Both the position numbers and the translations under genes were made by a program. Shown here piece after piece: positions 20,110-49,927 of a DNA stretch of 64,000 nucleotides. The notes under the pieces are model-generated. The model did no database searches. It was not told the origin of the DNA and saw only the letters and a list, made by a program, of their open reading frames with translations. This stretch comes from Kudoa neothunni (lineage: Eukaryota > Animalia > Cnidaria). Within the stretch, counting starts at the first letter, position 1. Each line of letters opens with the position of its first letter. The stretch covers positions 2,782,430 through 2,846,429 of the forward strand of contig OZ199840.1 of the NCBI GenBank assembly GCA_964304625.1, in the 5' to 3' direction.

Positions 20110-23100
20110 ATGGTTAAGTATAAATTTTTGAATTGCCTCTTATGTATATAGTGTTTTATTACCGATAATGAGTCTTTATTAGTCATTCAAATCGCATTTC
20201 TTTGTACGATGGAAAATGCAACGGCGCCCTCTTCTCCATCAATGTCTACTCCATTAGCTACGCTGAATTATCAAATTGAATATGATAGTTCTACTACCTC
20301 CAATTTAGTTAAGCATACACTTGGTGGAACACATTATGCTACAGGAAAATGTCGTATATTGAAGTCAAACGAAGCAGCAAACATGGGTGGTTCGACAACA
20401 GCAGCGGCGTATCAAGAAATATCAAGCTGCCCTGGATATATTACCGATAGTAGTAACACAAACTGTGTAATTTCTTGTGACAGTCAGAATAACAAAGTTC
20501 CATATAATAAACTTTCACCACGGACAAAATATATATACGTATATGATAATAATGATTTCGACACTGCTAAAGCAGATTATCCTAAAGGTGGAAAAGTGTT
20601 TGGTTTGGCCACACGTAATCCAAGTATCTTTAAAGCAATAAATTATATCATAAAATTTAGCATTATTGGTCAATCCTCAAGTAACAATCTCTACCAATGC
20701 TGATAGATTGAAACTCCTAACAAAAACTTGCTCCCCAGTTGCGTGCCCAATCCATTATAAAGACGCACAATTCAAGGGGGGTATTGCGGGGCAAACATGC
20801 GATACAGGAAGCACAGAGAATGATGTTGAATTTGACCTATTGATTCCTCATTATGAGATGAGATGTGTGAATTATCCAAGTTTCTTTTATTATATGCCAA
20901 ATGCATACATGAAGAAAAATATGGCTATTTATGAACCTCAGTATTACGTAACAAAAAAGGAGGGAGCTGCTAATCAAGTTATTCTTAAATTCACAGATTT
21001 AATGTTATCGTCAGAGATATGCGTTTTCAGTATTAAGGACGGTAAAACTGGTGCAGCTAACTCCGCGTATGAATCGAAATGTGGAAATACTGCGGGAAAG
21101 TGTTACGCACCTTGTAAAAATGTTGAGCTTACTGTAACAGCAGAAAAAGAAATATATAATGTTCTAATTCAAACCAGGAATCACGATCTTTCAAAAACAT
21201 CTGCTGATTTTGATGGATTTTCCCAAAATAAATTTCGTAATTTATTTTAGTCAATAATTATAATTATTTTATTATAAATCTTATAGCGATATATGAGACT
21301 GGTGATGGTTTGTTGTCTGCTTATACCAAAAATGGTGTATCTTTTGATGGTACATTATTAAACCCCTCTGCAAGTACAGGTACCAAGTTTTCTACGTGCA
21401 CGTTAAAGCATTACCCTGCTGACAAAGTCAAACACACGCCTTCAACTACTTCATGTAACGCGGCCACTAAAAAGAATAGTAGTAGTAGCAGTAGTAGTAG
21501 TAGTAGCAGCAGCAGTAGCAGTAGCAGCAGTAGCAGTAGCAGCAGTAGCAGTAGCAGCAGTAGCAGTAGTAGCAGTGGCAGCAGTAGCAGTAGTAGTAGT
21601 AGTAGTGAGGGTGGTGAATGCAAAACTGGTTGCGAAAAATTAGTAATTGAAGGACTATCTCCAGGGAAACCATATATTATCGAAATTGAACCTAATGGAA
21701 TCGCAGATCCAGCTTCTTTCAAAGAACAAATACTTATAAGGACAAGTAATAACTAAAAATTTAATATTAACTTAACTAATAATATTTACAAGATAATGAG
21801 GTGAATAAAAATTTTCAAGCAACCGCCCCTACTAAAACAGAATCAACAACTACACTAACAGCTATTGGAGGCGAAGCAGAGACAAATAAAAATAATGAGC
21901 CAAACTGTGAATACTATTTAAGTCCAACTGGGAAAAACACATTTTACACCGCTAAATGTACTGAAACCAATCCCTGCAGAGGGAGATGTAGAGAATCAAT
22001 AACTATTGTTGATCTTGAACCAAACACTTCTTACGACGTTAGGGTCATTGCTGATAAGGAGTACAAAGAACACATATATACAAATGTTTTAACTAGTATA
22101 TATATATATATATATATATATTAATTTATTCAACTCAATCTAGATCTGGCAACCTTGAGAATAACTCAAAAATACACTGAACAAGGATTGGAATTGAATG
22201 CACAATTGTCCAAAAAAGTCCCAGAAGCCATTTGCCATTATACAATCCAAATAAAAACAGATGAAAGGTTTGAAGATGTTTACGTCTGCGAAGCATCACA
22301 GACACCAGCAGCTGCGCCAGAAACTCAAAATACTCCACCAAGCTCACCAGTCGACTCCAATTCTAATCCCGAGCAAGAACAAACTGGTACTAGTCAAATT
22401 CAAAGTCTAAAATCAGAAGTTAATGGATTAAAAATTGCAAGAGCTGAATCTAATACCCCTACTGAAACTGATACAAATGTTGCCCCAGCTACAACAGTCG
22501 ATACAACTGCGAGCCCGGCCAATACAAATACATGCTCCTCATTTCCATTGTGCAGTTCTATTAAATTCAACGACTATGATGCAAATGAAGAGTATAAAGT
22601 GTCTATTACTGCAGTGGGAAAATCAGAGCGAAATGAAATTACTTTAGTAGCTAGTAAAAATATTTTCAATATTATTATTATATTTAAAATAAATAGCTGC
22701 TCCAAAGGGGAATCCAACAGAAAACGACAAAATAATATATGTGACCATAACAAGGGATGGTGAATCATTTGTTATAGAAAACACCCTACCATCTAGTCTC
22801 AATGAAAAATCCAAATGTAAGTGGGAATTACGTAACGCGAGTACCAAATCGATAGCAATTATTAAAAAATGCATGAGACGAAATGACAATGGATGTAGAA
22901 CGTACCCTTCATGCAAATCATTCACTATCAGTGGATTAGCAGATGGCAACAATTATCACTTGACTGTGTACAGTTCCACCGATAAAACAGTTTATGGGAC
23001 GGCTACGATTGAGCAAGGTAAAGCATTATTACTTCGAAAATAATTTAAATTGTAACTTTTTAGGAGCCAAAAGCAGTTCAAGGTTTATTAATTAATATTT

Positions 23101-23265
23101 TTAACATAAATAAATTTTACATTTAGTTCTAAAACCATGGTCATGTATTAATTTATTGTGTTTTTACAATTTAACTGGTATTGTTTTAGAATAATTGCAG
23201 TAGCCGCTATTGGAGCTATGATCATGGGTGCTATTGGTTTCGTGGTTTTCAAGAAGAAAAAATAA
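20110..23265 (+). CDS. Variant surface protein family copy 2 (intact; poly-Ser expansion in exon 4)
   Basis: Same 10-exon structure and splice phases as copy 1; no frameshift seen. Confidence 0.88.
21478..21606 (+). repeat. Coding (AGT/AGC)n microsatellite, 42 Ser + 1 Gly
   Basis: 43 consecutive codons, all AGY except one GGC. Confidence 0.95.
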
Positions 23266-25049
23266 ACGCCCTTATTTACGAATTATTACCCTAAAATCCA
23301 ACTATAGAAATTTATATTATTTTTCTAATGGTGTGATATTTATGAATTGTCGATAATTCAAATTTATCCATACTAGATAAAATAAAAATATTTTATCTTA
23401 GATGTGTTCCAACGTTATTATAAAACTTGATAGGGATGATATGACTCGGATAAAAATGTGGGATTGTTAATAAACTTTTAAAATTTTTTTATAATTATTA
23501 GAAATTGCTAAAACATAATGAAATATGATATACGCATAATATTTATTTTGTTAAACGAATAAATTATATTAAATTGAATATATTTATCGAATAATAGTTG
23601 TAAACGTTGATTAATCTCCTAAATATTTAGATGTTGTATTCGGTTACTTTTTTAAACTATACACTACATAACGATACTGAAATTGATGTCAAATATTAAT
23701 ATTATAAAAATTAGATAACGAGATATGATGAATATTCTGATGTTTTAAAAAAAATGAGCTCGACTGCTTGTGTATTGGTATCTAGGATTTCCAAAATTTT
23801 GCAGTAAACGCAAACTCACTGACTTAGGAACCATCATAGTGATTTTAGTATTTATTCCAGTTTTTAATGAAATTTTTGGCTATTTAAAACCTTAAGTTAG
23901 ATGGAAAATATTAATAAATAAATCAAAAAATTAATTAATTATAGGGTTACTTAATCCCAAAATTAATTTAAAAAAATATCTCAACATAATCGTTTGCAGC
24001 TATAAATCTCACACTTAAGTTTTTTAAGTATATTGACTTATTGAATTCTGCAAGAACGCTTCAAAGTGTTCTGATCGTTCCTGAGTCAAGATTCGATCTT
24101 TGTATTTTGATTCAGTTTATAACTACATTCTACATTTCATTTGGCGATTTTTGTTGTAGTTAAACTATAAACGTAAATTATAAATAGTTATTCCAACCAA
24201 ATTAAACGAAAGTGACAATATGACATGTTGCATAATTAATGCAGAATGGTTATAAGAAGACGAATTTTAAACTTATTCAAGATATCAAAAACAACATTAA
24301 TAGAAAATTAAGGTACTTTAAAAATAATGAAAACATTGAGTAAACCACTACAGCGCAGAAATATTTTAGTCAACTTACGAAACCCTCTGTACGTAGTGTA
24401 GATATAATATTTTGATATAACATAGCAAAAGACAATGACAGAGTCTTATATTGAATATGGTAAACACACGATTGATTTCTACATCGTAGAACATATTACA
24501 GTAAGGTATCGGTATAGGGAGGGTTTTTAAAAATGAATAGTAATTTATCACGCAATACTGAGGGGATCGAGTATGCGCGTTATTATATTTTTTCATGGAA
24601 AAGAGTCAATTTTTTATCTTTTTTCCAGGCCGTATAATTTTATATAAAGTGTTCAATTAGGATTGGTGTGAAATAATTAGGATAGATTTTCAAATTGAAT
24701 GGTTATCCAATAGTATTTATGACCGCTTTTACGTCACATTTCGTAATTATTTGACTTTCTCGATGAAAATCAGCGTCAACGTTGCATTTTGTTGATCTTG
24801 CGACATTTATATAAGGTTAACTGTACATTTCTTCATGTATAACTTTGACTTACGTCAATTCCACGATCTCATTCGCGTTGGTATGTAGCAATAGAATAAA
24901 ATTGAACCGACTGCATTACATACCATAAATTATTGTTTTTTCTGTATGACTAATATTTACATTAAATTCGTCATAGTTTATGTTTAAAAATGTCTTCCTA
25001 AATTAATCGCGCGATTTGATATATCGGATATTTCTCGAAACAATTTCAA

Positions 25050-25700
25050 TAGTTAGCTCGTCACCATTTCCCACGTTGCCTTTAAAGTGCGAAGACGCTT
25101 AAAGACAGTATATTTAAAAATTTTCGTAGAATCATTAAATAGAAACTGATTAACGAATGATTTCCTACACTTTGACTTCAAATCATGTGTGGTTTGAAAA
25201 TCTATTGATTTGGTGCCACTAGTATTCTTAGGAAGAAAGCACATTTCGATATAATTAAATTGATCAAGAATGAGATGTGTTTTTCCTTTTTATTCATTAA
25301 ACTGCCTATCTATGTTTTTAACAATTTCAAAGAACAAAGCTGCGGACGTCCAGCTATTTTTTTGAAAAAGATAATTTACTGGGAGATTAGTGACACCGTA
25401 TAAAACGGGGTGACTCTCTTTTTCGAGAATTTCATTCCCTTCAAATCGATTTTATTTTATAGTGTTATATGTTCATTTGCACAACTGTTCGTAGTTGAAA
25501 GCAATCTTGTCAAAATTAATAATTTATACATTTTTTCGTCCCCGAAAATCTACAGAAACCTTTTAGATCCATTCAAATACATTATCCATATCGGCATTCA
25601 CAACCCCACCATACAATATAATGTTCTTCGAACAGTAATGAAACTTGAAATTTAGAAGCAAATCATTATTGAAGAAAATGATTAATCAATAGATTTCAGC
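25050..25700 (-). mobile_element. Degenerate pogo/Tigger (DDE_1) transposase
   Basis: SRKRVT, PVNYLFQKNSW, HLILDQF, FLPKNTS...LKSKCRK in broken frames. Confidence 0.65.
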
Positions 25701-28320: not shown

Positions 28321-30519
28321 ATGCTGGAAGAACATTTTTATGGTAATTGGTATTTTATTGACAACCTGGGTGAAGGTTCATTTGGAAAGTAATATCCTTT
28401 CGAACGCACAGGCGAATCACTCACACACGATTGGATTTTAGTGTGAGATTGGCTAAAGACAAAGAAACCAACGATTTGGTAGCAGTTAAAATAGTTGATC
28501 TCTCGAAAATTAAGGAGATCAAAGATATTGAAAGGGAGGTGATCATATTAAATTTGAACACACAAGAAATTCCAATATTTTTCATTTAGATATGTATTCT
28601 AAAATTGATTAATCATAGCAGAATTGTTCGTTATTATGGTCATCGCAAAGAATCTACGCTTTACTATATATTTTTTGAATACCTCACAGGCGGAGAATTA
28701 TTTAATTGGATAGGTATGGGATTGTGGTAGTTCTTCGAATACCACTAAAATATTTAATATAATCGCACGATTATATTCTTGATAACTATAGATCCTGGTT
28801 ATCCTATGGAGAATTCTCTTTGTTTCAGATTTTCATCTCAAATATTAGAGGCTATAGTAATCAGTTTCAACAAGTGTTGAGGTTGTAATATGTTGTTTAG
28901 AATTATTTGCATTTAGTTGGAGTAGCACACAGAGATCTAAAATTAGAAAACGTCCTTTTGGATGAAAATAGTAACTTTAATTGGCGAAAAAATTTATTCA
29001 ATATAAAAATAATTTAAATTATTATTTTAGATAATGTTAAATTGATCGATTTTGGATTGTCAACAATATTCCGATATAAAGGGAAAGAACGTTTTCTTGC
29101 TAAGATGTGTGGTTCAATGCCTTATACAGCTCCCGAGATTCTGTTATCAAAAGAATATCGTGCCCAACCAGCCGATATATGGTCATTTGGAGTGATATTA
29201 TTTGCACTATTTACTGGCGGTGATTATCTTCATTTGGCTGTTATCAATCAACTCCAAATATTATGAGTATTATTTTAGAGTTGCCATGGGATGCAGCTAC
29301 TGACGAGTCTGCGGAATTTCGTCGTTTTAAAGTTGGCCAGCAACCTGCGGAATCTTGGGGTCGTTTAGATCAATATAAGCTAGGTTTAGATTTTCATTTA
29401 ATTTTAAGGCGAGTTTTATTATACTTGATTAGATTTAATTACGCATTTATTTTGCGTAAGTCCAATTCAACGCTACACATACAAAGATGTGTGTGAGAGT
29501 TCGTGGTACAGATTGTGAGTTTTTGTTTGGATTTAAATGCACCTATTAATTTTGATTTATTAAGCTCCCAAAAGATGGAATCCAACATAGGTAAATATAT
29601 GTGCGCTTGTAATTACACAATGCTAATTATTTTTCTGAGTATAGCAATTGCAACAACACAATCTAGTGGAGATATTAACAGTTCGAAGTATTTTATTCTC
29701 GAATAGACTAGCCTGAATTAGAGTTATTGAATTAATTTATTATGTTACAGGTATGTGACAAATAGTCAAGCGCCTAGCAATCCAAGTAGCGGCGGAGTCA
29801 CTACATGTCTATCTCAGATGAATCCAACTACTGAATCGATTTCACTACTTTCCAATCATAGTCGATTCCCCAAGCAGAACGACATTGGAAATAATGCAGT
29901 GGATGCATTTTCTCAACCTATCAAGGCTGATGATTTGGTGGTGAGCCAAATGACCCAGGCCACTCAAACTTGTCAATCTACCCAGGTAAATTCTCATCGA
30001 CTTTATAAGTGTTATCGCATTTCAATATATATTAATTTGAAATATGTAGAAAACGATCTTGAACAATGTGGCTAGAAAAATGACTCGTTTCTATGTCAAA
30101 AATGCTTCGGATGAATTTCTCAAACAAAGCATTGTGGAAATTCTCGACAGTTATGTGCTACAATGGACACTTTTAAATGAATTTGGCGTATGGATTATAT
30201 TCATTTATTATGACTTTGCCTAATTGATTAACTATTTTATTAAGTTTTCTGTAAATGCGATCGATCGTCGTCGAAATCCATTGAATTTTAAAATCGAACT
30301 TCGACCTGTGTCATTACCGCCCTTAACATCTTCGAGCGAAACTAATCCGCCACCAGATAGCATTATTTTGGTGAATATAAAAAGAAACAAAGTAAATTAA
30401 ATATGAAATTTACAAAATTGATTAACCTATTATAGGGTGATGGAATCGAATTTAAAAAATTCTATCGACACATCAAGAATGACCTCAATCGATTGGTTAC
30501 ATGTGTGGATGTGATTTAG
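28321..30519 (+). CDS. CHEK1: Checkpoint kinase 1, about 14 exons
   Basis: Spliced: LGEGSFGNVRLA, VAVKIVD, YYGHRKE, EYLTGGELF, HRDLKLENVLL, DFGLSTIFRYKGKERFLAKMCGSMPYTAPE, ELPWD. SQ/TQ cluster (KYVTNSQAP, AFSQP). C-terminal KA1 domain RKMTRFY...DRRRNPLNFKI...KGDGIEFKKFY. 13 GT-AG introns of about 44-78 nt. Confidence 0.95.
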
Positions 30520-30613: not shown

Positions 30614-33600
30614 CTAAACAGTTGTGCTCGTAATAGTATAATTTTTTGGGTTGTTGAGAGTGGACGAATAGAAACCGTTTTGGTCGATTCGAGAAGCAAG
30701 CGAATTGTTATTGAGTTCGTTGGAGAGGGGTTTATCGTCACGGAGTAGTTTGATTAACTTAACAAGCGATTGTGTTATTTTGGCATCATACTCAACTAAT
30801 TGTTTCCTATGGTTAGTATAAAAAGATTGATAACTCTCGGGTGGTTGATCCTCAAAAATAGCCATTTGAGAAGAGCAGAATTCCTCACTCAATGATAAAA
30901 TGGCAAATATCCGCTAAAATACAATCAAGCTTACAAACAATAACAGACTCTATGTCTTACTTCAATTAGATATTCGTTGTTAAGCAAAAATCCGGCTATA
31001 CACTGAGCAAGGAAGTAACCGTGGTACTGTATAACTTGGTCAACATTTCTGACCTATATAAAAAGATTAAAAATTTGAAACTACTTAAAAATATGAGTTA
31101 GATGTTAGTGTAGTTACAATATTCTCATAAATAGAAAAAACTTCCTATTTTATCAAAAATATTTATAGAATATATTACGATAACACGTAAAAATAAATTG
31201 TATAATTTAAAATGGTGATATGTCTAATGTTCCAGTCTCCATTTTAACATTAAATTCTCTAAAATTATTTTTAAATTTTTCTTAAATCAATAAAAATTAT
31301 TGTAACAACTAGAAACTATTTTTTGAAAAATATTCAAAATATAGCGTCATGGAGATGTAATTATTTTCTCTTATTCATGTAAATTTTAAACGTAAAATAG
31401 GCATGACAAAGTTAAACATGTTTACATATTGTGAGTCAAGTTAAAATAAATGATAATTTTTACTAATATAAACAACTATTGAAGAATTATTAACTGAATT
31501 ATGTTATTAGAATGGGCGAAATGCTTACTTAGATGGTATATTTTAGATTCAGAAGAATGGTTGCTTAAATTAGATATAACAGTGATTTTAGTTTATACGA
31601 AAAGCTTAATTATGATAAATGTAGCATGTGGATTATGAATGTTGTAATCCACATGTTTAATATATTAAATTAATATTTTTATTAAGGTAATTAAAGCGAA
31701 ATTTAACGTTAAAAATAAGAAATAATAAAATTTAATTTATTATATTCATATAATTCTATTCATATGAGTGGTGATAAAATGAATATGATTTTTTATTATT
31801 AAGGTGGATAAATATTGCAATGACACATGCGAAAACCATACGCTGTTTTTAAAGTTGCGTCACAATGATACAACACTTGAAGATATGAATAAATAAACAT
31901 ATTTAAAATTAAACTTTATGATTATAAAACTTTTAGTTCATTACTATTAAAATAACAAAATAACTACTCAGGCTTTAGATAATTTATTGATATGTCGAAA
32001 TCAACGCCATAAACTTGATTTGAACGCAAAAGAAATTGTAAAAATATCTTGGGAAAATTCAAGACTAATTTTAAGAAGTACTCAGTGCGATGCATGCGCA
32101 ATGGAGAAATACAATGAAACCACGTTACATTATGAACACGAAATTTTAACTTTCTTAATATTAAATGGCAAGTTTTTCAATATTTGACTAAGTTTAATTT
32201 TAATATTTTAAAGATAATAGATGCTTCGAAAATTAAAGAATATCATTCTACGGAAGTAATAATAATTAAAAACACTAAATATTATAATAATTTTTAGTAA
32301 AAAATTACATTGATTGGGAAAAATTAGTGGTAAATATTAAATTAAGTAATTTCTTGCGCATGCGAATAATTTAAGTTCCGCCGTTTATATTCCAAAAATG
32401 CGCGTAAAATATAAAGGAAATAAATTTGAATAAAATTTCTAATTTCCGAAATGAACAAATTTTCAAATAATTGAGAGATATCTTATCCGTAACAATTATT
32501 TCAGTAACAATTAAGTAATTTAAAATTAATGCAGCAGATAATAATTGAAAGTAGTTTAAAAAAAGGATTAGTCAAAGTTATGGGGAATCTTAATATATTA
32601 ACGCACGCGCACTTTATTTATTTCTACCCGCTCAAATTTTTCAACTTGATAAATAACACATGTATCAATTTTTGAATTACTCACAATTTTTATTCAACCA
32701 AATGTATTTAAATAAATTAATCAATTTTTAGTCCAAGATCTACCTGAACAATCCTACAAAAATAAAAAATATTTTATTTAAAACACATACAATTAAATTT
32801 AATTAAATTAAATCAAGTTAAATTAAAATAAAATAAAGTATTGAGAGATTTAACACGAAATTTAATTGTTAATACAAATAACGCGCAGTGTATTACATTT
32901 GCTAGATGATACTCCAGATTTTGCCAGTTGGGTTCGATCACTTCGAAGGCTAAATAATACTCAAAAGTCTGTATGAAATGAAGCATTTTATTGTTGACAG
33001 AGAGCAGCATTTTGTAGAACATGAACCTAAACAAAAAAATGATAAAAGTGAGAAGATATCAATAATTAAAATTAACTACTCTTGAGGTGTATGGTAGGAT
33101 TTATTGAATTGTTGCTGCACACATTTTTCCCACAATCTAAAAACAACTTCATCGTCAAATTTATACCCATTTGAAATACTTGGTGTGAAGTCGTTCGACT
33201 CTTTTGACCAAAAAAATCAGCCTAAAAAGCATCTGGTATTTTATCAAGGATTTTCTATCCACCACCAACGACAAAGGCCAAGCAACATCAAAGTTGAAAC
33301 TAAAGGCCTCGTAGCCGAATACGGGAGTGTCGAGTGTTTTGGATTTGTCATCCCAGTTGGTGCCGATTGACCTGGCCATACTGTTTATACTGGATAGTTG
33401 AGTTCGGAGACTAGTAGGAAGTAGAACCACTCTACAGATTGAAACATTCTTATATGAAGACATAAATAAATCAATCCGACTTGAGGTCATCCTTATGGGG
33501 GTCACTGGCACACACACTTAACGAAAGTGCGATTTCAACAGAAGATTCCAAACGATGAATATTAACGTCTATTTGGCAATTTGTAATTATAGCATCACTC

Positions 33601-36600
33601 ACAACAACTAACCATGAATAATTTTTTCGAGTTCATTCCCCAAATTATCCATTAACAGCACGTAAAAATCTCCTTGGTCGAACATAAAATAATGTTTCAA
33701 CGATCTAATATATTAATTTTTTAAGTCATACATTAGTTACATTTAAATTTATGTGACTATTGGCTTGTATGTTTAAAATTTTTCTACTTATTTTTATTGT
33801 ATTTACCTTATTTATTATCACTCCTACTTAATTAATTAAAATTAATTTTTTTAAATATATGTTGAGATGAATAAATTCCTCGTATTTTAATATTTTAGCC
33901 GCCATCCGATGATTAACCTTCGAAATAGAGTGGGGTAGATTTCTACCCCAAGTGAATTTTGCCAACAATACTATAGTGTATAAATGGAACATAACTCCTC
34001 TAAATTGTTCGTAATCTTTTATCGTTACGAAAACTTTCAGAATAATGAGTTGAAATTTTTTTTATCACATATCAAAAAAGTTAATGTAAAAACACCTCTC
34101 AAATAAAATTATTTAAAATATTAATACATGCGATTTTTAATAATTTAAGAAAATTCTATCGAGTAAATAATGAATAAATAACGAAACACCATACACGCGA
34201 TGCCAACACGCATGCGCTCATAGATTAAGCATGTTGTTCTCTCATTATTTTTACACCAGTTATCCAATATACGACGACTTTTTATCAGTTTGCTTATTTC
34301 TACATAGTAGAAATAAACATCCCAAAACACATGTGAAAATTGTAAATCAATATTCCTAATTTGGTATTATGGAGAACATTAAAAAGAGATATAGTATAAT
34401 TGTTCAACCTTTTGACAAGTTTTGTGTTTTAGAAAGAAATTGAAAACGTATATAATAACTTATTTGTGAAATAAGCACTGTTTTCCATCATTTTATGTTT
34501 ATGCGCAGTTTTACATTGCGACGTTTAAAATAAGAAACATTAATTGTCAGCTGTTATAAATCTTGAATTAAATGTTAAAACTAAAAAATCGCGTAAATAC
34601 ACCTATTAATACAATCATACTCCCTGGAAATGTAACAAACATTATATGCGCGCATGCGTACATATAATATAACTTCAATAATTTGTTATTTATTCGAAAG
34701 TTCCGCATCATTTGTCAATAAATGTTAACTTTTATTTGGAAGGTGTAAAAATTTCAGCTACTTAAAAAATAAATACATCGGATGCTACATGGAATGAGTT
34801 AGAGTTTTTTTAACGAAATAGACATTTATCGGCAAAATGGTAGTTTAAATAGGGAAGTTCGATCAAATATACTTCGAAAACTTAGTCAAGCATACTTAAT
34901 TTTAAGTCTCCACGAGCTCACCTATGCATTAAAAGCTGTTTTAATTCTGTTAAACTTTGAATTTCACATATATTCATAAAATTTATCTTTCTTCTTTTAA
35001 TTAAATTTTTAAAAATAATATTTAATTTTAATCCTTTTTTGGATGTTTTAAATCCGCCGTAAAGAAGCAGATGTAATATCGCATTTTCTTTAAGAATTCT
35101 TGTCGTATCGCTCGATTTAGCGCTTATTTGTTTGAAGTGATTAAAATGTCATCACTTCAAAGTATAACGTTTGGCGAACTTAACGACTTCTGGAAAATTT
35201 AAACGCATTAGATGAAAGTTCAACGGATAAATTGAGTAATGAGCATATTTATTCAAAAATTCATAGTGATAAAATTGATATTTGTAATCCCTGGCTCCAG
35301 GAGTCCACGGTGATCCGCAGAGGGTTAATTAGATTCTAAAATTACAATTCAAAGTTTATATATTCGATACAATACTTAATAATCGAGGAAAATCAATTCA
35401 ATCAGATAAAAATGATTTCAAATTATAAATTTAATTTTAAAAAATATTAAGCCAACAAAATTAAAACTCTACAAAGTTTAGCAAATAAAAAGAATATTTT
35501 TTCAAATTTATAACGACCACTTTATACATACAGTATGTTTAATAAACATTCACGCACGCGCGAAAATCTCGATATAGATAATACTTATGAAATTTAATCA
35601 GAAATAACGCAATAATTTTTGTAATCCATTAAGTAATTGTGATTAATAAAAACTTAATATTTAAAAAATGTGAATTTTACGAATATTTATCTTCAAATTA
35701 ACTGCAAACAATTTAAGCCAATAGTCAAACTTGAACAAATTAACCTCAAATATGGCAATAATTTCTTCTCTTGGACCAACAACTGCAACAAACACGCACT
35801 AGCTTGATTGTGTGCATTTTCCACAATCGCCATGCAGGAACTGTATTCCTTGGTGAGTTGAATGGGTGAATTTGCATTTGTTTCACAGTCGAAATTTTTA
35901 TCTACGCAATATTGTTCATATCAACGCGCCAATCAAAATAACCAACCAAACTGTCTTATAACGTTTATATATTTTCCTGTGGATAGTATTTTATCTGCAA
36001 TCTATCAAACAACAATAATTTAAATTAAATCAAATTAAATAATTAAATTAAATCCAAGTGGACTTATGTAAAGATAAGCATATATATATATATATATATA
36101 TATATACAGGTTGAAGAAAGGATGGCGTTTTAGCCGAAGACAACACGTATTTCTTCTCCCAAAACACATCATTCAACTCATCTTCGACATTATTCACAGT
36201 GACATCATTACTCTCAACCATAAACTTTTGTTAATATTAATTTTAGCGAGTTAAAAATTTAAAGACCTCATCATAGGGATCATAGATTAATCCTTCGTGT
36301 ATCCACTTTTGAAGAGATTCAAAAAATGGTGCGCACGCTTTATCAAGTAAATAAGTGAACAGTTCATTCGATATCCCCGCGCTATAATTATTAATGTGAT
36401 TACACGCGTGAAATCATGTGCGCGACGTTTACCACTGAGAAAGTTGATAGGATTCGTAAAGAATATCGATCACTTTTTGAGCGGTTAAAGCTCCCTATTA
36501 TATATTCAAAATGTCGCGCGCGCACACATTTGAATTTATACTTTGGACAATTGTTTACATAACCGTTCCAGTGGTTGCAACTGATTAATGCAGCTGTGCG

Positions 36601-38394
36601 CATGTGTGGCCAAACATTGCAGCGTTAGTTGTTTCTAATTATGCTTTGCTTACAATTCGCAAAACCACCAAACAACTAACTTCTTTGTGCTGGCTTTCCA
36701 ACTCACAAATATATGCCATATACTCCCTGAGTAAAGTTTCAATTGCTTCAGATAACGCCTGCGCAACTCGACCCTCGTAAAGTGGAGACACATCTAGACG
36801 CACGCACAGTTTAAATTTCAATTCAATTTTCAACAATATTGAAATTACCATTTATAAAACTGGATATAGTTTGAAAAGATCCCACCAACGGAATCACACT
36901 TGATACTAGCTCTTTAATAGACATGTCTATTAAATATACAAGTGTTAAATGAGCCTGAGAGGAGATAATTAATTACCATACGAACTCGAAATTTTTAAAA
37001 CCCAAGCATTGTTTTCATTGAACAGATGAATAAATTTGCCTTGTATTCCCTGTGTAATAAAAAAAATAAGATGTTGAGAGATTAATAGAAATAGGCACTA
37101 TAAAAAGAAATAATAAGTCTTCAATTGCCATTATTTCTTGAATATTGATATCCACGTCTTTAAGTTGTTGCTTTAATATTGTCTATATATATTTAGATAT
37201 ATATATAATTTAATAATGAGTAAAATAATTAAATGCTCTAACAAGCGAGAATATAATACATTTGGGGTATTTCCCAAATAAAGTTGCTCTTCATCATCAA
37301 ATTCTATCAACTGATATTTCATGTATTTTCTCGCCATAAACCATGCAGGCAACTTTGGCATTTGCGTATGCTCGTGGGCATCGTCATGTTGTTGTTGATC
37401 GTCGCCCATTTTGATAGAGATATTCAATCTAGACATTTCTCTATCAATAGTGGTGGTTGAGGTGCGAGACAATTTAGGTCTGTAATGATGAATGGATGAA
37501 TCTCTCGATTGAATTTTAGTCTCAACTTGTGTGGAGCTGAATGTCTGCTCTTGATGACCTCCACTCTTAGAAATAGAAGACTCTTGCAGTGGAATAGTGT
37601 CTTCAGATTCTGGGATTTGCTTGGAATCCATAACCACTTAACACTTTTCTAAGTGGAATTTGGATGTTGATAATGAAGAAAAGTGTGAATTAATTAATGA
37701 ATCGAATTACGACTGCTCACGATACTAGAATCTTAAACTAACAAACTCACCTTTATTAGAGGTGTAGATTTTTTATATCGTTTCCATGATTGGTTGGCGT
37801 CAATTTCAATACCATTCACATCGTTAGGGTGATGCTCTGTTGTTATAGGAAGTGTCGCAGATGGAATATTTTGTTGAAGATTGACTACCGCATTTGTTCG
37901 ATTGTTAGTTGAGTTGTTGTTGCGATGTTCGTCATCCAACTCACTGCCCAGAACGTACAACAAATGCGGCTGATTTTGTATGTTCGATAGAAAATAAATC
38001 AACAAATTCGCGTAATGAATACTATATCGAGATCATTGTTAGAGGAGCTTAATGTCCAAAAATTACTCATCAACCAACAATTCTCGATACACACGACGCA
38101 ACTCCTTTTTATTGATCTCTCCTTTGGAACACAAACAGTTTATTGAATCACCCACCAAGTCCTTGTATTTATATTTTATGATATTAAAGCATTGCGAAAT
38201 ATCTGCAGTTACCACATCGTAAGTAAATGTACCAACATTCTCCAAAAGAATGTCAGTATATGTGGTCGAATCTGGCCCTCCATCCAATCTTAATTAACTT
38301 ATAATAATGCAGTTTGGTTTAAGTACTGCAAATTTGAAATTAGACTGTCTACAAGAGTTTGAATTTCCTCTCTTATCACCTCACTACTTACCAT
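30614..38394 (-). CDS. TUBGCP2: Gamma-tubulin complex component 2 (GCP2), multi-exon with two ~2-kb introns
   Basis: N-terminus MVSSEVIREEIQTLVDSLISNLQLDGGPDSTTYTDILLEN; IEDLLFLFIGIQGKFI; ACAPFFESLQKWIHEGLIYDPYDEFMVE; PSFLQPIADKILSTGKYINVIR; LRSLKHYFMFDQGDF; FDVAWPLSLVVDRKSLIKYQMLFR; FEVIEPNW. One junction near 37620-37750 could not be resolved by eye. Confidence 0.93.
33913..35328. mobile_element. piggyBac-like insertion(s) inside the large GCP2 intron
   Basis: TTAA-CCTT left end with GGGGTAGA-TT-TCTACCCC hairpin and AGGG-TTAA right end; the ends do not match beyond 4 bp, so possibly two elements. Confidence 0.45.
36080..36106. repeat. (AT)n microsatellite next to a GCP2 splice donor; similar tracts at intron 5 donors of family copies 1 and 2
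   Basis: Direct reading of the sequence. Confidence 0.9.
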
Positions 38395-39165: not shown

Positions 39166-42100
39166 TTATTTTTTCTTCTTGAAAACCACGAAACCAATAG
39201 CACCCATGATCATAGCTCCAATAGTCGCCACTGCAATTATTCTAAAACAATATTAGTTAAATTGTAGGAACATAATAAAGTAATACATGACCATGGTTTT
39301 AGAACTAAATGAAAAATTTATTTATTTTAAAAATATTAATTAATAAACCTTGAACTGCTTTTGGCTCCTAAAAGTTACAGTTTTAATTATTTTCGAAGTA
39401 ATAATGTTTTACCTTGCTCAATAGTGGCAGTCCCATAAATTGTTGGATTGATAGAACTGTACACAGTCAAGTGATAATTGTTGCCATCTGCTAATCCACT
39501 GATAGTGAATGATTTGCATGAAGGGTACGTTCTACACCCATTGTCATTTCGTCTCATGCATTTTTTAATAATTGCAATCGATTTTGTACTCGCGTTACGT
39601 AATTCCCACTTACATTTGGATTTTTCATTAAGACTAGATGGTAGGGTGTTTTCTATAACAAATGATTCACCATCCCTTGTTATGGTCACATATATTATTT
39701 TGTCGTTTTCTGTGGGATTCCCCTTTGGAGCAGCTATTTATTTTAAATATAATAATAATATCGAAAATATTTTTACTAGCTACTAAAGTAATTTCATTTC
39801 TCTCTGATTTTCCCACTGCAGTAATAGACACTTTATACTCTTCATTTGCATCATAGTCGTTGAATTTAATAGAACTGCACAATGGAAATGAGGAGCATGT
39901 GTTTGTATTGGCCGAGCTCGCAGTTGTATCGACTGTCGTAGTTGGAGTGACATCTGTATCAGTTTCAGTTTGAGTAATAGATTCAGCTCTTGCAATTTTT
40001 AATTCATTAATTTCTGATTTTAGACTTTGAATTTTACTGGTACTAGTTGGTTGTTGGTCGGGGTTAGAATTGGAGTCGGCTGGTGAGCTTGGTGGAGTAT
40101 TTTGAGTTTCTGGCACAGCTGCCGTGTCTGTGATGCTTCGCAGACGTAAACATCTTCAAACCTCTCATCTTTTTTTATTTGGATAGTATAATGGCAAATG
40201 GCTTCTGGGACTTTTTTGGACAATTGTGCATTTAATTCCAATCCTTGTTCAGTGTATTTTTGAGTTATTCTCAAGGTTGCCAGATCTAGATTGAGTTGAA
40301 TAAGTTAATATTTTGATATATATACTCGTCGTAACATTTTCATATATGTGTTCCTTGTAATCCTTATCAGCAATGACCTTAACGTCGTAAGAAGTATTTG
40401 GTTCAAGATCAACAATAGTTATTGATTCTCTACATCTTCCTCTACAGGGATTGGTTTCAGTACATTTAGCGGTGTAAAATGTATTTTTCCCAGTTGGACT
40501 TATGTAATACTCACAGTTTGGCTCATCTTTCTTATCAGTTCTTGCCGTATCTCCAATAGCTGTTAGTATAGTTGTTGATTCTGTTTTAGTAGGGGCGGCT
40601 GCTTGAAAACTTTTATTATCCTCATTATCTTGTAAATATTATTAGTTAAGTTAATATTAAATTATTAGTTATTACTTGTTCTTATAAGTATTTTTTCTTT
40701 GAAGGAAGCTGGATCTGTTATACCAGATTCAATTTCGATGATGTATGGTTTCCCTGCAGACAGCCCTTCAATTACTAGTTTTTCGCAACCAGTTTTGCAT
40801 TCGGCGCCGCTGCCATTATCAGTCTTTTTAGTGGCCGTGCTACATTTAGTGATTGATGCAGCGTGTTTAATTTTGTCAGCAGAGTAGTGCTTGAGCGTAC
40901 AGGTAGAAAATGTGGTCCCAGACCCTTGTTTTAAAAATGTTCCGTCAAAAGATACACCTTGCTTGGTATAATCTGACAATAATACGTTTTCAGTCTCGGA
41001 TATTGCTAAATAATTTATAAGTTAACACCGAATTAAATAAATTACGAAATTTATTTTGAGAAAACCCATCTAATTCACTAATAGAAATTTTTGAAAGATC
41101 GTGATTTCTGGTTTGAATTAGAACATTATATATTTCTTTTTCTGCAGTTAGAGTAAGCTCAACGTCTTTGCATGGTGCGTAACACTTTCCTGCAGTATTT
41201 CCACACTTTGATTCAAAGGCATCACCCGATGCTGCACTTTTAGCGTCCTTAATACCAAAAACACAAATCTCAGACGATAATGATAAATCTGTGAATTTAA
41301 GACCAACTTGATTAGGAGCTCCTGTCTTTTTAATCACATAATACTGAGGCTCGTAAATGGCCATGTTATCCTTCATATATACATTTGGCATATTATAGAA
41401 AAAGCTTGGATAATTCACACATCTTATTTCGTAATGAGGAACCAATAAGTCAAATTCAACGTCGTTATCTCTGTTGTCCTCGTCACATGTTCCTCCAGCG
41501 GTACCCGCCTTGAATTGTGCGTCTTTGTAATGGATGGGACATGCAACTGGAGGGCAAGTTTTTGATAGTAGTTTCAATTTTTGGTCATTTTTAGAGATTT
41601 TAACCTGAGGATTTACCAATAATGCTAATTTAAATAACTAAAATTATTTATTTAAAGTTAATTAGATTACGTATTGCCAAACCAAACACTTTTCCACCTT
41701 TTGGATAAGTCGCCACATTAGCAGCGTTCTCTTCAGTATTATCATATACATATATATATTTTGTTCGTGGGGTAAGTTTATCATAAGGAACTTTACTACC
41801 TTGACTATTGCATGCAATTACGCATTTGTTATTATTATTGGTAACATATCCAGGGCACTCAGTTATTTCTCCATACGCGGCTGCTTCTGTCGATCCACCC
41901 ACGTTTGCTGCTGTATTGGATATCAGTATACGACACTTTTTTCCATCGCCATAGCTTGATCCGACAAGTATATGTTTTACTTTATTTGATTTACTGTCAT
42001 TATCGTATTCAATTAGGTATTTGAGTGTGGCTGTGGGAGTAGAAGTAGCTGTAGATTCAGGCACTGTTGCATTTTTAATCATACAAAAGAATGCGATTTG

Positions 42101-42178
42101 AATGACTAATAAAAATTCATGATTGATAATAAGAAAATAAATACATAAGAGGCAATGCAAAAATTTATCCATAGTCAT
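39166..42178 (-). pseudogene. Variant surface protein family copy 3 (1-nt deletion in exon 6; pseudogene, truncated form or sequencing error)
   Basis: Same exon structure; ACA CCG GCA of copies 1/4/5 reads ACA CG GCA at ~40124, splitting exon 6 into two ORFs. Confidence 0.75.
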
Positions 42179-42525: not shown

Positions 42526-42543
42526 TGACGTCATGTAAGGTCA
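42526..42543. promoter_or_regulatory. CRE-like TGACGTCA plus AGGTCA half-site upstream of copy 3 (same at 59405-59422 for copy 5)
   Basis: Exact TGACGTCA followed by TGTAAGGTCA about 350 nt upstream of the ATG in both class-B upstream regions. Confidence 0.35.
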
Positions 42544-43059
42544 TCCCAGGTATAAATAATATGAATAATTGGTAAAAATATTTATTCTTCTTCATTACGA
42601 ATAAATAATCATCTAGATAAATATAAATGTTGGCAGTGTCTATTGGCCCGAACAAATTGTTTTATTTAATTATCGAGCTTTTTATTATAGTAAATCTATT
42701 TTGTCTGACATAAAACAACTTGAAATTGTTTACGTAATTTTATTTTCGAAGCATATCGGACAAAAATATTTTGTATAATGTAATAAGGTTTCGATTAAAT
42801 GGTCCGAAAAAACTCATTTTATTGAGTTTATGAGTTATTTATTCAAATGAACATTCTTAGTTGTAATTTAACATTTAATTATCTAAGTAATTAAAATTTT
42901 AAATTTTAATAGTGTTAATTTTATGGTAACGCGCGTTAATTTTATTGTATTTATCCCTTAATGGTGCAATACAAAATTATTCTGAAAAAATGTAAGATTT
43001 TTCATAAGAACACAATAAAGATAAAGTATGCAGTTGTTATTTTTCAAGATATTTGGTTA

Positions 43060-43800: not shown

Positions 43801-44331
43801 GAACGTTAGCTTGAAATAATGACAAAATATTGTTTTTTAGTATTGAAAATCCAAATCAAAATACTCTTGAATATGAAATAAGTCATAAATACATATTAAT
43901 CATGCATTTATCAATTAAAAACTGTTTCATCAATGATCATTGTAACCTTATGTACCGTAAACAATCGCGTATTATAGGTTGCATCCAAATTTTTGGCGTG
44001 TAAATTGGGGGTTTTCAATAGACCTACAGATCGGTCGTTCTGGAATTTTAGATGTTGAACGCCATCCATAAAAATAAATATTCTGTTGTATTTAGCTTCA
44101 TTTAAAAAATCTTCTTGTAAATATTGGAATGCTTTTAAGATAACTACAAACTACACGACTATAAACATAATTAAAATAAAAGATTTTATTTCTTTATAAT
44201 ATGATCAGTTACTATTAAAAGTCAGCAGAACTGGACCCCGAGAATTCATCATCATTATTATCATTATTTTCAGGATTCACCAAAAGTTGGTCGTTTGATA
44301 TTATAATGCCATGAGTGACCATATCACAATA

Positions 44332-44927
44332 CATTCAAACCCGGATTATCCAAAAAATTTGGGACGGCTATTTTCTTTCCGGATGGCGAGGTTCCAGTTA
44401 ACCGAATATAAACAACATCGTTAGCGCGCATTTTTTTATTATTTACTAAGTAAAATACTTTAATTTTTTCTACTCTAATGTAAAATGTTGACATATCTAT
44501 TAACTAAGAATAAGAAGCTTGATTTAAAGGAAAAATAGTACATAATAATGGCAGTTTTTATACGTCTACAGAGGAGTAACCTACTTTTTTAAATAATAGA
44601 TAGTTAATTTTTGTTTATTATATCTCTAGGCATGTGCTTAGATATAGTAAAAATTAATATAAGAATTTGATGCATAATTTAGGGTTTAAAAGATAAATTT
44701 ATTAATAAATAATCTAGAAATAATTTTGTTTCAAATATTGCATGGTATATATGCTATATTGTATGTCGTACAGTGATGGGTGCTACTTTTATTCAAAAAT
44801 GTGATTAACAGTTCCTCCGGTTTGGGGATAATCGAACATTCATCGACACATTCATATCAATAAAATCCAACTAAACTTTAAAATTTCTTCCGAATAACGA
44901 GATTTCCGGATAATCGAGGTTCGGCTG
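44332..44927. mobile_element. pogo/Tc1-type MITE
   Basis: TA-CATTCAAACCCGGATTATCC...GGATAATCGAGGTTCGGCTG-TA degenerate TIRs with repeated GGATAATCGA. Confidence 0.5.
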
Positions 44928-45099
44928 TATTAATTCAGCTCAACGTCAGTTATGCTAGTTGTAATATTTTAATCATAAAACTCACTTTTCTTCATGCACG
45001 AGTTTGGAGTACTTATGTCGGTATTTCCGTCCTCTATCTCCTTTATACTTGAGAGAGACAATTCTTTATACAGAATATAACTTTCATTTCCGTCTATAA

Positions 45100-46220
45100 T
45101 ATCGAAGTTTTCACATTTTTTGAATCATTTAATTATCAAAATATTCGAAAAATTATCTAAGGCATTTTTACCCATCCCACAACTAAGCGCGATTCAGGTT
45201 TCTTAATTGTATCATTTTTAGTGGTGGGTTTTTTATCAGATATCATCCAAGAATGCCATTATTTTCGAGTCTAATCTTTGAGTGGATCAATGATTAACAC
45301 ATCAGAAGTCTGTAACACAGAGGTACAGCACCTAGGAATGACCAATTTATTTTTTTAAATTCCTGTAGCATAGCATTGACAGACTCATGGCCATAGATTC
45401 TAAACACATCCCATATTAGGAAACTTTAAGGGCTAAGAAAACTCCTGCTTTTTTCATCCATACTTCACCAAACCAAAATTTAGTTAGATTTTCATCCATT
45501 CATCGTTTAGGATGTATTTTTACAATAACACCTAACAGAAAGATTCCTTTGGTATTTTCTTTCATTTAAAGATAATTATTAGACAAAGTTTTTTTACATC
45601 AGCTTGACAAGCTAATACAACAATAAAATACTGTCTCTCGTGCTCTTATGTTTTCAAAACAACAATTTTCCGATCCTGTCAATCGTAGTGTTTCCCGGTA
45701 TACCAATATACTTCGGAGTATCGCCTATGTTCGCAATGTTTGTTTGTAAAAATCATACATTTTGCACTCTTTCGACATAAACAATAAAATATGTACTTCT
45801 TCATCAATTACTTCCGACAGCTTTTGTATAATGTAAATTTTTTGCCGTTGTTCTAACCCAAACCTACTAGTAAATCTATTACAACACTCTGGTGAAGACA
45901 TGGATTGAGGGATGTTGTATATTGGGCTAACTGAAAAGCTATGGTTCTTATTGAAAGTCTTGTCATAATAGGCCCATATTACATTAATTCCAAAACTCAT
46001 TCAAGCAATTCATTTTTAATTTTTTTATATTGAGATACTAAAAATCTGGCTTACTTGTTCGGTTTTGGTATTTCTTTAAGATTATCTTTTCGCTTTCTCC
46101 ATCGTCTTATTAACTCTCGTGAAACTCCAATCTCTTTTCTCACAAATCTAAATTCATGTTTCTCTGCATGGCATACCATTTTTAATTCATAACTGTCTTA
46201 TTGACTCTTTGTTTACCCAT
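45100..46220 (-). mobile_element. Degenerate pogo (POGK-like) transposase
   Basis: HERQYFIVVLACQAD, GVIVKIHPKR*MDENLTKFWFGEVW, LIWDVFR, VIPRCCTSVLQTSDV. Confidence 0.8.
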
Positions 46221-46923
46221 GACAAGGATTTACAAGTATCAAAGACGAGTGCTCAAATTATCGTAAAGTTCTCTTTGATCCAAATGTAAAGAGTTTTGTG
46301 ATAGTACTGATAAAGAATATTAAATATGATCATAATTTTGTTACGAAACTGATTCATTACATTTGTTCTACAGAATGTTACAATCAGACATACACGGAAC
46401 TTGTAAACGTAACCAATCAACGTGTAAAGAAAGAATCAAATATGTTACTCTATACATAATATAGATGCCTTAATTTCGGTTGTGAGCAGTGTGAGATATA
46501 AAAGGATTTTAAATGAATATATTACTAGTAACATCAGATTTAACATAACGCTGTGGATCGGTAGGATCACTTCATATTCAATTTGTGCAGAGGTAACCTT
46601 ACCAATGCTTAACGAACTCAATCTGATACTTGAATCTAAGTATACGCACACTTATAGTAACATTTCGGGAAAAGCTCCTGTAAATCTTCAAAGTATGGCC
46701 GGTAAATAGATCGCGCCCTTATTTTGTGACGAAATTTTTGGTAAAAAGTTTGCGACCAAAACGAGATTATATACAATAAATATTAAATCATATTTTTTGA
46801 TTTGAACATTTAATAATTTGAATTATTGATAAATAAAAGCGTGGTTAAAAATATTGGAGCATAAATTAAATAATCGAAATTTCTCTAACTAGATAGTAGG
46901 GAAAAATTCGTATATATGAGCGT

Positions 46924-49900
46924 TTATTTTTTCTTCTTGAAAACCACGAATCCAATAGCACCCATGATCAAAGCTCCAATAGCCGCTACTGCAATGATTC
47001 TAAAACAATATCAGTTAAATTATAAAAAAACAATAAATTAATACATGACCATGGTTTTAGAACTAAATACAAAATTTATTTATGTTAAAAATATTAATTA
47101 ATAAACCTTGAACTGCTTTTGGCTCCTAAAAGTTACAATTTAAATTATTTTCGAAGTAATAATGCTTTACCTTGCTCAATAGTGGCAGTCCCATAAATTG
47201 TTGGATTGATAGAACTGTACACAGTCAAGTGATAATTGTTGCCATCTGCTAATCCACTGATAGTGAATGATTTGCATGAAGGATACGTTCTACACCCATT
47301 GTCATTTCGTCTCATGCATTTTTTAATAATTGCAATCGATTTTGTACTCGCGTTACGTAATTCCCACTTACATTTGGATTTTTCATTAAGACTAGATGGT
47401 AGGGTGTTTTCTATAACAAATGATTCACCATCCCTTGTTATGGTCACATATATTATTTTGTCGTTTTCTGTGGGATTCCCCTTTGGAGCAGCTATTTATT
47501 TTAAATATAATAATAATATCGAAAATATTTTTACTAGCTACTAAAGTAATTTCATTTCTCTCTGATTTTCCCACTGCAGTAATAGACACTTTATACTCTT
47601 CATTTGCATCATAGTCGTTGAATTTAATAGAACTGCACAATGGAAATGAGGAGCATGTGTTTGAATTGACCGGGCTCGCAGTTGTATCAACTGTTGTAGC
47701 TGGGGCAACATTTGTGTCAGTTTCTGTTTGAGTAATAGATTCAGCTCTTGCAATTTTTAATTCATTAATTTCTGATTTTAGACTTCGAACTTGACTAGTA
47801 CCAGTTTGTGGTTGTTCGGGATTAGGACTGGATTCGGCTGGTGAGCTTGGTGGAGTATTCTGAGTTTCTGGCACAGCTGCCGGTGTCTGTGATGCTTCGC
47901 AGACGTAAATATTTTCAAACCTTTCATCTTTTTTTATTTGGATAGTATAATGGCAAATGGCTTCTGGGACTTTTTTGGACAATTGTGCATTTAATTCTAA
48001 TCCTTGTTCAGTGTATTTTTGAGTTATTTTCAAGGTTGCCAGATCTAGATTGAGTCAATAAGTTAACTTTTTGAGAAATATACTCGTCGTAACATTTTCA
48101 TATATGTGTTCCTTGTAATCCTTATCAGAAATGACCTTAACGTCGTAAGAAGTATTTGGTTCAAGATCAACAATAGTTATTGATTCTCTACATCTTCCTC
48201 TACAGGGGTTAGTTTCAGTACATTTAGCGGTGTAAAATGTATTTTTCCCGGCTGGACTTATATAATACTCACAGTTTGGTTCATCTTTCTTATCAGTTTC
48301 TGCCGTACCTCCAATAGCTGTTAGTATAGTTGTTGATTCAGTTTTAGTAGGGGCGGTTGCTTGAAAATTTTTGTCATCATTTTTCTCTTTGAAAATTATT
48401 AGTTATTGAGAGTTATTTTTCAGTTATTACCTGTCCTTATAAGTATTTGTTCTTTGAAAGAAGCTGGATCTGCGATTCCATTAGGTTCAATTTCGATAAT
48501 ATATGGTTTTCCCGGAGATAGTCCTCTAATTTCTACTTTCGTGCAATCATTTTTACAAACTTCAGGTTCATTCTCCCCGTTATTCTTCTTGCAATTCGTT
48601 TCATTGGAAGTAGTTGGCTTAATTGTATCAGCAGCATAATGCTTTATAGTACAAATAGTGCTAGATGTTCCTGACGTCGGTTTAAACAGGACAGTATCTA
48701 ATTTTACACCCTCCTTTGTGAAATCGGACAATAAACCACCTCCAGTTTCAGATATAGCTAAAAATTTCTAATAAAATAATTTTTGGTTAAAATAAATTAC
48801 GAAATTTATTTTGGGAAAATCCATCAAAATCAGCAGATGTTTTTGAAAGATCGTGATTCCTGGTTTGAATTAGAATCTTATATATTTCTTTTTCTGTAGT
48901 TACAGCAAGCTCAACATTTTTACAAGGTGTATAACATTGTCCCGCAGTATTTCCACACTTCGATTCGTACGCGGTGCTAGCTGCTGAATTTTTACCGTCC
49001 TTAATACTGAAAACGCAAATTTCAGATGATAATGATAAATCTGTGAACTTAAGGCGAACTTGCTTATCGGATCCTGCCTTTTTTGTTACGTAATACTGAG
49101 GTTCATAAATAGCGATATTTTTCTTCATATATGCATTTGGCATATAATAAAAGAAACTTGGATAATTCAAGCATCTCATCTCATAATGAGGGATAAATAA
49201 GCTAAAATCTACAATATTCGCATTGGAATTTGTCACACATGAATCTCCTTTTGAACCAACCGCGAATTTGGCGTCTTTGTAGAAAATAGGACAATCAACC
49301 TGTGAGCAAGTCTTATGTACGAACTTCAGTTTTTCAGCATTCGTAGAGATTATTACTTGAGGATTGACCAATAATGCTAAATAAAACGGATAAATTTATT
49401 CGATATTAATTATTTTTCTTACGTATTGCCAAACCGAACACTTTTCCACCTTTAGGATAATCTGCTTTAGCAGTGTCGAAATCATTATTATCATATACGT
49501 ATATATATTTTGTCCTTGGAGAGAGTTTATCATATGGAACTTTGCTATTCTGACTGTCACAAGAAATTACACAGTTTGTGTTACTACTATCAGTAATATA
49601 TCCCGGGCAGCTTGATATTTCTTGATACGCCGCTGCTGTTGTCGAACCACCCATGTTTGCTGCTTCGTTTGACTTCAATATACGACATTTTCCTGTAGCA
49701 TAATGTGTTCCACCAAGTGTATGCTTAACTAAATTGGAGGTAGTAGAACTATCATATTCAATTTGATAATTCAGCGTAGCTAATGGAGTAGACATTGATG
49801 GAGAAGAGGGCGCCGTTGCATTTTCCATCGTACAAAGAAATGCGATTTGAATGACTAATAAAGACTCATTATCGGTAATAAAACACTATATACATAAGAG

Positions 49901-49927
49901 GCAATTCAAAAATTTATACTTAACCAT
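46924..49927 (-). CDS. Variant surface protein family copy 4 (intact)
   Basis: ATG at 49927, all 10 exons in frame, ends IIIAVAAIGALIMGAIGFVVFKKKK-stop. Confidence 0.88.

Follow-up and report, generated by a model that had tools for sequence, protein, structure and literature searches.

Five paralogs of a predicted surface-protein gene in Kudoa neothunni are patchworks probably assembled by interlocus gene conversion

We analysed a 64,000-nt stretch of the genome of the cnidarian Kudoa neothunni (assembly GCA_964304625.1, 40.26 Mb in four contigs). The whole stretch, C3:2782430-2846429 on contig OZ199840.1 (hereafter C3), is called the window, and its positions serve as coordinates wherever no contig is named. 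A self-BLAST search showed that one 10-exon gene, whose product is predicted to be a surface protein, is present five times in the window, twice on the forward and three times on the reverse strand. The five copies are mosaics in which the closest relative of a given copy changes along the gene. Recombination among them is established statistically, and it is very probable that the patchworks arose by interlocus (ectopic) gene conversion. The interval under study (20110-49927) is bounded by the start codons (ATG) of c2 and c4, two of the following copies:

7436-10471, forward strand: copy c1, 10 exons, frame intact (exon projection and frame check)
20110-23265, forward strand: copy c2, 10 exons encoding 915 aa (gene model built directly)
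39166-42178, reverse strand: copy c3, one 1-nt homopolymer deletion in exon 6 (CC to C near 40125)
46924-49927, reverse strand: copy c4, frame intact, the most chimeric of the five copies
56052-59057, reverse strand: copy c5, one 1-nt homopolymer deletion in exon 7 (AAA to AA near 56503)

When the five loci were aligned with MAFFT, pairwise identity per 100-column window ranged from 0.4 to 1.00 and the best partner varied from block to block. An earlier reading of the sequence alone (the original prediction) had listed seven such shifting partnerships, and the alignment reproduced all of them. Exon 2 of c2 and c4, said to differ at about 3 residues, is 98% identical at the DNA level, has 3 residue differences and includes part of a 331-bp exact run. 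In exon 3, c2 resembles c1 (95%), and intron 3 of these two copies is 100% identical, as claimed. The end of exon 4 groups c2 with c4, intron 4 groups c2 with c3 (98%) and c4 with c5 (87%), and the predicted pairing of c1 with c2 at the end of exon 5 is carried by 9 consecutive informative sites and recurs in intron 5. The flanks follow the predicted groupings too: upstream DNA sets c1, c2 and c4 against c3 and c5, and the 3' flanks group c1, c2 and c5.

Copy c4 is c1-like in its upstream DNA, identical to c2 in exons 1-2, of "orphan" sequence at the start of exon 3 and in exon 4, c5-like in intron 4, and identical to c3 and c5 in exons 6-7. The gene body of c3 is a mosaic of c4, c5 and five copies of a second array described below (d76, d115, d83, d66 and d121), and c5 is likewise a mosaic of d76, d83, d95, d66, d133, c3 and c4. 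Exact tracts of 126-380 bp occur within DNA that is otherwise diverged by 10-40%, often between oppositely oriented copies. Tracts of this kind and the orphan segment of c4 are as follows:

20102-20432 of c2 (forward strand), equal to 49935-49605 of c4 (reverse strand): 331-bp exact tract that begins with 8 bp of upstream DNA, includes exon 1 and intron 1 and reaches 250 bp into exon 2
39526-39905 of c3, equal to 47284-47663 of c4 (reverse strand): 380-bp exact tract that runs from the end of exon 6 through intron 6 into exon 7, most of which it covers
47030-47282 of c4, equal to 56158-56410 of c5 (reverse strand): 253-bp exact tract
40568-40802 of c3 (reverse strand), equal to part of d115 in the other array, 2.7 Mb away: 235-bp exact tract
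49161-49393 of c4 (reverse strand): orphan segment at the start of exon 3, at best 62-72% identical to any copy of the 17-member subfamily and 81% identical to genes at C3:4.998-5.025 Mb

The start of c4 exon 3 had been called unique, which holds within the subfamily of 17 copies. That the orphan segments are truly unique was rejected, as they are 77-81% alike to another subfamily: their nearest sequences lie in the gene cluster at C3:4.998-5.025 Mb and at C1:10.72 Mb. The layers of the mosaic thus differ greatly in age.

The checks proposed with the original prediction, namely an alignment of the five loci, sliding-window trees, a GENECONV-like test and the pairwise homoplasy index (PHI), returned significant recombination. 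PHI gave z = -21 to -33 for the shared region, the gene and its 5' half (0/1000 permutations). In 100 simulations on a single tree, run with the regional rate profile and gamma-distributed rates, z was -0.43 +/- 1.05 with a minimum of -3.3, compared with -23 observed; since single-tree data give values near 0, rate heterogeneity does not explain the signal. Sliding-window trees (parsimony bootstrap, 200 columns) grouped c2 with c4 and c3 with c5 (split 24+35) at 100% over c2 positions 20086-20482, and then supported 12+35, also at 100%, over 20727-21126. Later windows favoured 23+45 (75%), 25+34 (83%), 12+45 (82%) and 15+24 (~69%). Furthermore, all 15 topologies were compared in each of 11 segments by the approximately unbiased (AU) test: 24+35 was the sole accepted tree for exon 1-2a, and it was rejected in intron 4 (p = 0.000), exon 5a (0.017) and exon 5b-intron 5 (0.000). 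As every topology was rejected in at least one segment, the claim that no single duplication tree fits is borne out.

The same picture was obtained when the copies of both arrays were taken together. A GENECONV-like permutation test on 1121 polymorphic sites (17-copy alignment without the twin copies described below, 105 pairs) was significant for 68 pairs. The c2-c4 pair, which differs at 334 of the 1121 sites, shares a run of 156 consecutive polymorphic sites (p = 0/2000). Copies c3, c4 and c5 each switch to another nearest relative every 1-3 windows of 120 bp in the full alignment of 17 copies.

The form of the shared stretches points to conversion. They are internal patches with the prior partner or unrelated sequence on each side (c2/c4, c3/d115, c3/d76, c3/c4), and patches link copies in inverted orientation (c2/c4, c2/c3, c1/c5, c2/c5). 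Between inverted copies a single crossover would invert the interval and unequal crossing-over is impossible, so that patches shared by them argue for conversion. Taken together, the internal patches, the inverted partners and the fact that silent sites track the coding sites lead us to non-crossover gene conversion, with patches that are presumably non-reciprocal. We propose that a double-strand break or heteroduplex in one copy would be repaired from a paralog without crossover, by which a short patch would be pasted in; the repair pathway itself is what we infer from the form of the patches. Donors could be copies of the same array in either orientation, the second array 2.75 Mb off and, for older patches, distant subfamilies. 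The five copies belong to a subfamily of 17 copies and to a family with at least 150 matches in the genome, so many donors sit outside the window.

The original prediction held that ongoing segmental gene conversion or ectopic recombination generates new variants. The tests and the internal patches support the segmental exchange. That the process continues today is suggested by the exact tracts: 0 differences over 331-380 bp imply less than ~1% divergence in exons in which the paralogs elsewhere disagree at most silent sites. New variants are seen only at the level of sequence, as new combinations of blocks. One more specific mechanism, exon shuffling at phase-1 introns, was rejected: 28 of 211 breakpoint intervals touch an intron, compared with 38.5 expected (p(>=obs) = 0.98), so breakpoints are not enriched in introns, and exchange does not proceed by whole symmetric phase-1 exons.

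Exchange has left the two halves of the gene in different states. Synonymous divergence (dS) is 0.76, 0.73 and 0.87 in exons 2, 3 and 4, and 0.30, 0.09 and 0.15 in exons 5, 6 and 7, while the ratio of nonsynonymous to synonymous divergence (dN/dS) stays at 0.15-0.5 in all of them. Among the five copies introns 6-9 share 84-100% identity, and for introns 6-7 the figure among c2-c5 is 98-100%. Because dS is low and the introns are near-identical as well, the uniform 3' half reflects concerted evolution and not protein-level constraint. A block table drawn up at 97% identity shows the same gradient: in the 5' half each copy has its own combination of blocks, and in the 3' half there are 1-2 shared types. 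Under our preferred explanation, conversion strikes the 3' half (exons 5-10 with the introns between them) often enough to keep it in concerted evolution; exons 2-4 retain old divergent lineages, sequence types that persist while being reshuffled into new combinations.

The second array holds 12 closely related copies at C3:34-175 kb, near the start of the contig and 2.75 Mb from the window, which itself lies ~2.8 Mb into C3. The two arrays are colinear between window 6993-46486 and C3:34323-73679, and colinearity returns at 59794-63975 versus C3:88667-92855. Part of this correspondence is a nearly exact duplication:

6993-39000, versus C3:34.3-66.3 kb: duplicated segment of ~99.9% identity with c1, c2, a Chk1-like kinase and a gamma-tubulin-complex gene

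Between window 7000-39000 and its twin we counted 26 substitutions and 57 indel events, nearly all of the latter 1-nt changes of homopolymer length, most of them on the side at the start of C3. The 32-kb twin may be a segmental duplication of very recent date; alternatively it is a redundant contig that was left unpolished. The twin of c1 is d34 (C3:34.8-37.8 kb) and that of c2 is d47 (C3:47.5-50.6 kb); since both are frameshifted where c1 and c2 are open, the side at the start of C3 looks unpolished. In the second array as a whole, 8 of the 12 copies are frameshifted and d115 holds a run of N, and because the region looks poorly polished, pseudogene status there is not trustworthy.

Beyond the twin segment the genes depart from their surroundings. 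Between c3 and its positional twin d66 the gene body diverges by ~11%, although the 5' flanks of the two are 99-100% identical and the adjoining intergenic DNA differs by 0.05-1%. The c3 body contains tracts close to d76 (322 bp, 98.4%), d115 (235 bp, 100%), d66 (182 bp, 100%) and c4 (482 bp, 99.6%), and d66 in turn contains tracts 98-100% identical to d115, d133, c1, d121 and c2. Copies c4 and c5 are 82% and 90% identical to the copies at matching positions of the second array. The family extends much further: of 488 candidate matches to the exon-3 domain at least 150 were scored, and they are spread over all three large contigs. Many of the matches sit in dense clusters, for example at C3:0.18-0.94 Mb, C1:16.3-16.9 Mb and C2:9.8-10.9 Mb, towards contig ends. 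TTAGGC and TTAGGG telomere repeats were looked for and none was found, and the nematode SL1 spliced-leader sequence was looked for and is absent.

The assembly was compared with short k-mer contigs (Logan) that an independent assembler had produced from a single run of what is presumably the source sample. They matched the c4-specific positions 48480-48817, 49140-49466 and 49989-50558 with 0 differences at a depth of ~3.6 (single-copy), and the one at 49140-49466 spans the c2-like, orphan and c1-like junctions of c4. A 499-nt contig at depth 8.4 equals the c2/d47 version of 49437-49935. The reads neither refute nor fully confirm the assembly.

A number of observations weigh against gene conversion as a complete account, or against parts of the evidence for it. 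No k-mer contig bridges the 331-bp shared tract, and the c4 version of 49516-49604 is uncovered; two raw Illumina DNA runs and one RNA run under the same species label contributed no reads. Residual homopolymer indel errors remain in the twin array, so that in the 3' half, which is 97-100% identical, consensus or polishing noise could account for part of the single-base patterns. In that near-identical half alone (45 informative sites) PHI was not significant. A copying model cut each copy of the 3.4-kb gene into 12-18 segments (mean 15.1; median span 163 bp, interquartile range 87-293), and since the no-recombination null yields 8.4 segments per copy (range 6.9-9.3), roughly half of these switches may be noise; the predicted change of nearest relative every few hundred bp stands as an order of magnitude. 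No signature of GC-biased conversion was seen, as GC content at third codon positions lies at 0.25-0.34 and is no higher in the homogenised half. GC bias is not an obligatory feature of gene conversion. Some flank groupings, such as the c1/c2-like 3' flank of c5, fit crossover or duplication boundaries better.

Some of these points would suit an assembly or polishing artefact, in which mixed reads of paralogs or haplotypes gave a chimeric consensus. Noisy long reads apparently underlie the assembly, 1-nt homopolymer indels are numerous in the twin array, which also has a run of N, c3 and c5 each have one homopolymer frameshift, and the Logan contigs fail to bridge shared tracts. We nevertheless consider such an artefact very improbable: the mosaic blocks (100-500 bp) are far below long-read length, adjoining blocks are 10-40% apart and thus not confusable by consensus callers, c1, c2 and c4 keep intact frames of 870-915 aa with all GT-AG sites, the assembler kept apart two 32-kb copies of 99.9% identity, and single-copy-depth k-mer contigs matched the segments and junctions specific to c4 without difference. 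It is scarcely conceivable that there was no recombination at all and that one duplication tree, with regional rates, selection or convergence, mimics the mosaic. The tenfold variation of divergence along the gene and the ~8 spurious copying-model segments per copy on tree-like simulations would be in keeping with such a history, but the simulated PHI values stay far from the observed one, the conflicting splits have 100% bootstrap each, each of the 15 trees is rejected somewhere, and introns and synonymous sites share the pattern.

That unequal or ectopic crossing-over and duplication of chimeric units (birth-and-death) made most of the junctions is unlikely, even though the flanks bear its marks: their classes switch between copies, with upstream DNA dividing 1+2+4 from 3+5, and c5 is c3-type upstream and c1/c2-type downstream, which fits occasional crossovers or duplication boundaries. 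The window array is also colinear with C3:34-93 kb and yet c4 (82%) and c5 (90%) depart from their positional matches, and the arrays are unequal in size (5 versus 12 copies). Most blocks, however, are internal patches with the original partner back on the far side, inverted copies have exchanged sequence without inversion of the interval, and 12-18 segments per 3.4-kb gene would need implausibly many crossovers. Crossing-over probably contributes alongside conversion. Programmed or somatic diversification, a cassette system like VSG or vlsE with silent donors feeding an expressed gene, would match the large family, the predicted surface product, the short patches and the frameshifted state of some copies. 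It is extremely improbable here, as all copies share the full gene structure and the upstream region, no expression-site asymmetry is seen, the exchange looks multidirectional, and the frameshifts are homopolymer slips that are possibly errors. Interlocus gene conversion, probably with some crossing-over, is the reading that we carry forward.

To characterize the product we used the gene model of c2. Its introns, 39-50 nt long, without exception have GT-AG ends, and introns 1-7 share phase 1; the N-terminus is hydrophobic and signal-peptide-like, and two micro-exons (19 and 18 nt) come before the last exon, which encodes a hydrophobic helix and a KKKK stop tail. When the exons of c2 were projected on the other copies, all splice sites were found to be retained. 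Copies c1, c2 and c4 are open throughout, and the single-base deletions in c3 and c5 may be real or sequencing errors. Exons were searched and folded singly, and the joined coding sequence was checked for frame and length. Exon 4 of c2 carries a long (AGC/AGT)n poly-serine run (21468-21590) that the other window copies are without, and this run differs by 15 nt in length from that of the twin d47.

From these features the family is predicted to comprise type-I membrane proteins with a signal peptide, Cys-containing Fn3/Ig-like modules, Ser/Thr/Pro-rich linkers, a transmembrane helix and the KKKK tail. Pfam fn3 (PF00041) scored 19.4 bits in exon 5 and 12.8 bits in exon 7, below the gathering cut-off of 25. 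AlphaFold, given an alignment of paralogs and of sequences from an exhaustive search, modelled the exon-3 product as two all-beta beta-sandwich domains with a predicted local distance difference test (pLDDT) score of 86.7. Foldseek matched this model to tandem Fn3/Ig pairs (common gamma chain, gp130, basigin, titin) with probability 0.99-1.0 and template modelling (TM) scores of only 0.3-0.44. The ectodomain is thus a predicted chain of Fn3/Ig-like modules.

Sequence searches placed few relatives beside the family. An Atlas search with the exon-3 domain, a word-based protein search and an exact look-up of a c4 open reading frame each gave no match. The exhaustive search returned 14 unnamed fragments of 22-43% identity from metagenome and run assemblies; one weak bacterial match among them was dismissed as spurious. 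In a contig from another public run, positions 6170-7201 hold two adjacent open reading frames that resemble exons 2 and 3 (28% identity in exon 3). This contig is eukaryotic and also carries SNF5 and ribosomal protein S14 genes, so that the family is present in at least one other eukaryote.

Other genes and elements lie around the copies. Exons of an XPD/ERCC2-type helicase (DEAD_2, HBB, Helicase_C_2) occupy 3107-5763 on the forward strand, directly left of the duplicated block. Within the block, between c2 and c3, there are protein-kinase exons at 29042-29496 on the forward strand, which by eye look Chk1-like, and a gene for a gamma-tubulin complex component at 30614-38287 on the reverse strand. 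Upstream of c4, k-mer depth in the source-sample contigs rises to 29-59 at 50425-50818, compared with ~4-8 nearby, which suggests an unannotated multi-copy element.

Altogether, the results show a large family of predicted surface proteins that diversifies by short-tract copying within and between arrays, which leaves one half of the gene uniform and reshuffles the other. Should the proteins face a host or partner cell, this would supply raw material for antigenic or recognition diversity, and the shuffled ectodomains would presumably matter for function. Gene trees, orthology calls and dating for such a family are meaningless unless made block by block, and assemblies of such arrays need long-read validation. 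One may go further and picture the family as a germline diversity-generating repertoire of hundreds of Fn3-chain membrane proteins in a small animal-like genome, in which the homogenised 3' half serves as a "handle" that seeds patch conversion in the exposed 5' modules and the architecture is selected for new surface variants, for immune evasion or self/non-self recognition; we regard this as speculative and rather unlikely.

The mechanism is a known one, and a literature search on the very large family returned only general analogues, with the family itself not found described. Among these, the variant-antigen families of parasites (Plasmodium var, Trypanosoma brucei VSG, T. cruzi MASP and apicomplexan surface families; PMC1386720, PMC1934917, PMC2691823, PMC4413850) are alike in being very large families of predicted surface proteins in clustered arrays, one of which here lies near a contig end. 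They also share conserved termini, a variable part that in Kudoa is presumably the exposed one, and segmental recombination into new combinations. The Kudoa family differs from them in lacking sequence or domain homology, in its intron-rich 10-exon genes and in that no telomere repeats were found. Tandem beta-sandwich ectodomains of the Fn3 or cytokine-receptor type are matched by the predicted exon-3 fold and its Foldseek hits to tandem Fn3/Ig structures; they differ in that Pfam stays below its cut-off, the TM-scores are low, and an extra conserved Cys pattern is atypical of Fn3. The closest parallels in mechanism are interlocus conversion and concerted evolution in the major histocompatibility complex, plant resistance-gene clusters and segmental duplications, where short non-reciprocal patches and tree incongruence along the gene are found as well. 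As in other tandem families under interlocus conversion, a homogenised part stands beside a diversified one and exchange links direct and inverted copies; what sets the present case apart is that it concerns an undescribed Fn3-like surface family, without a GC-bias signature, which exchanges sequence with an array 2.75 Mb off.

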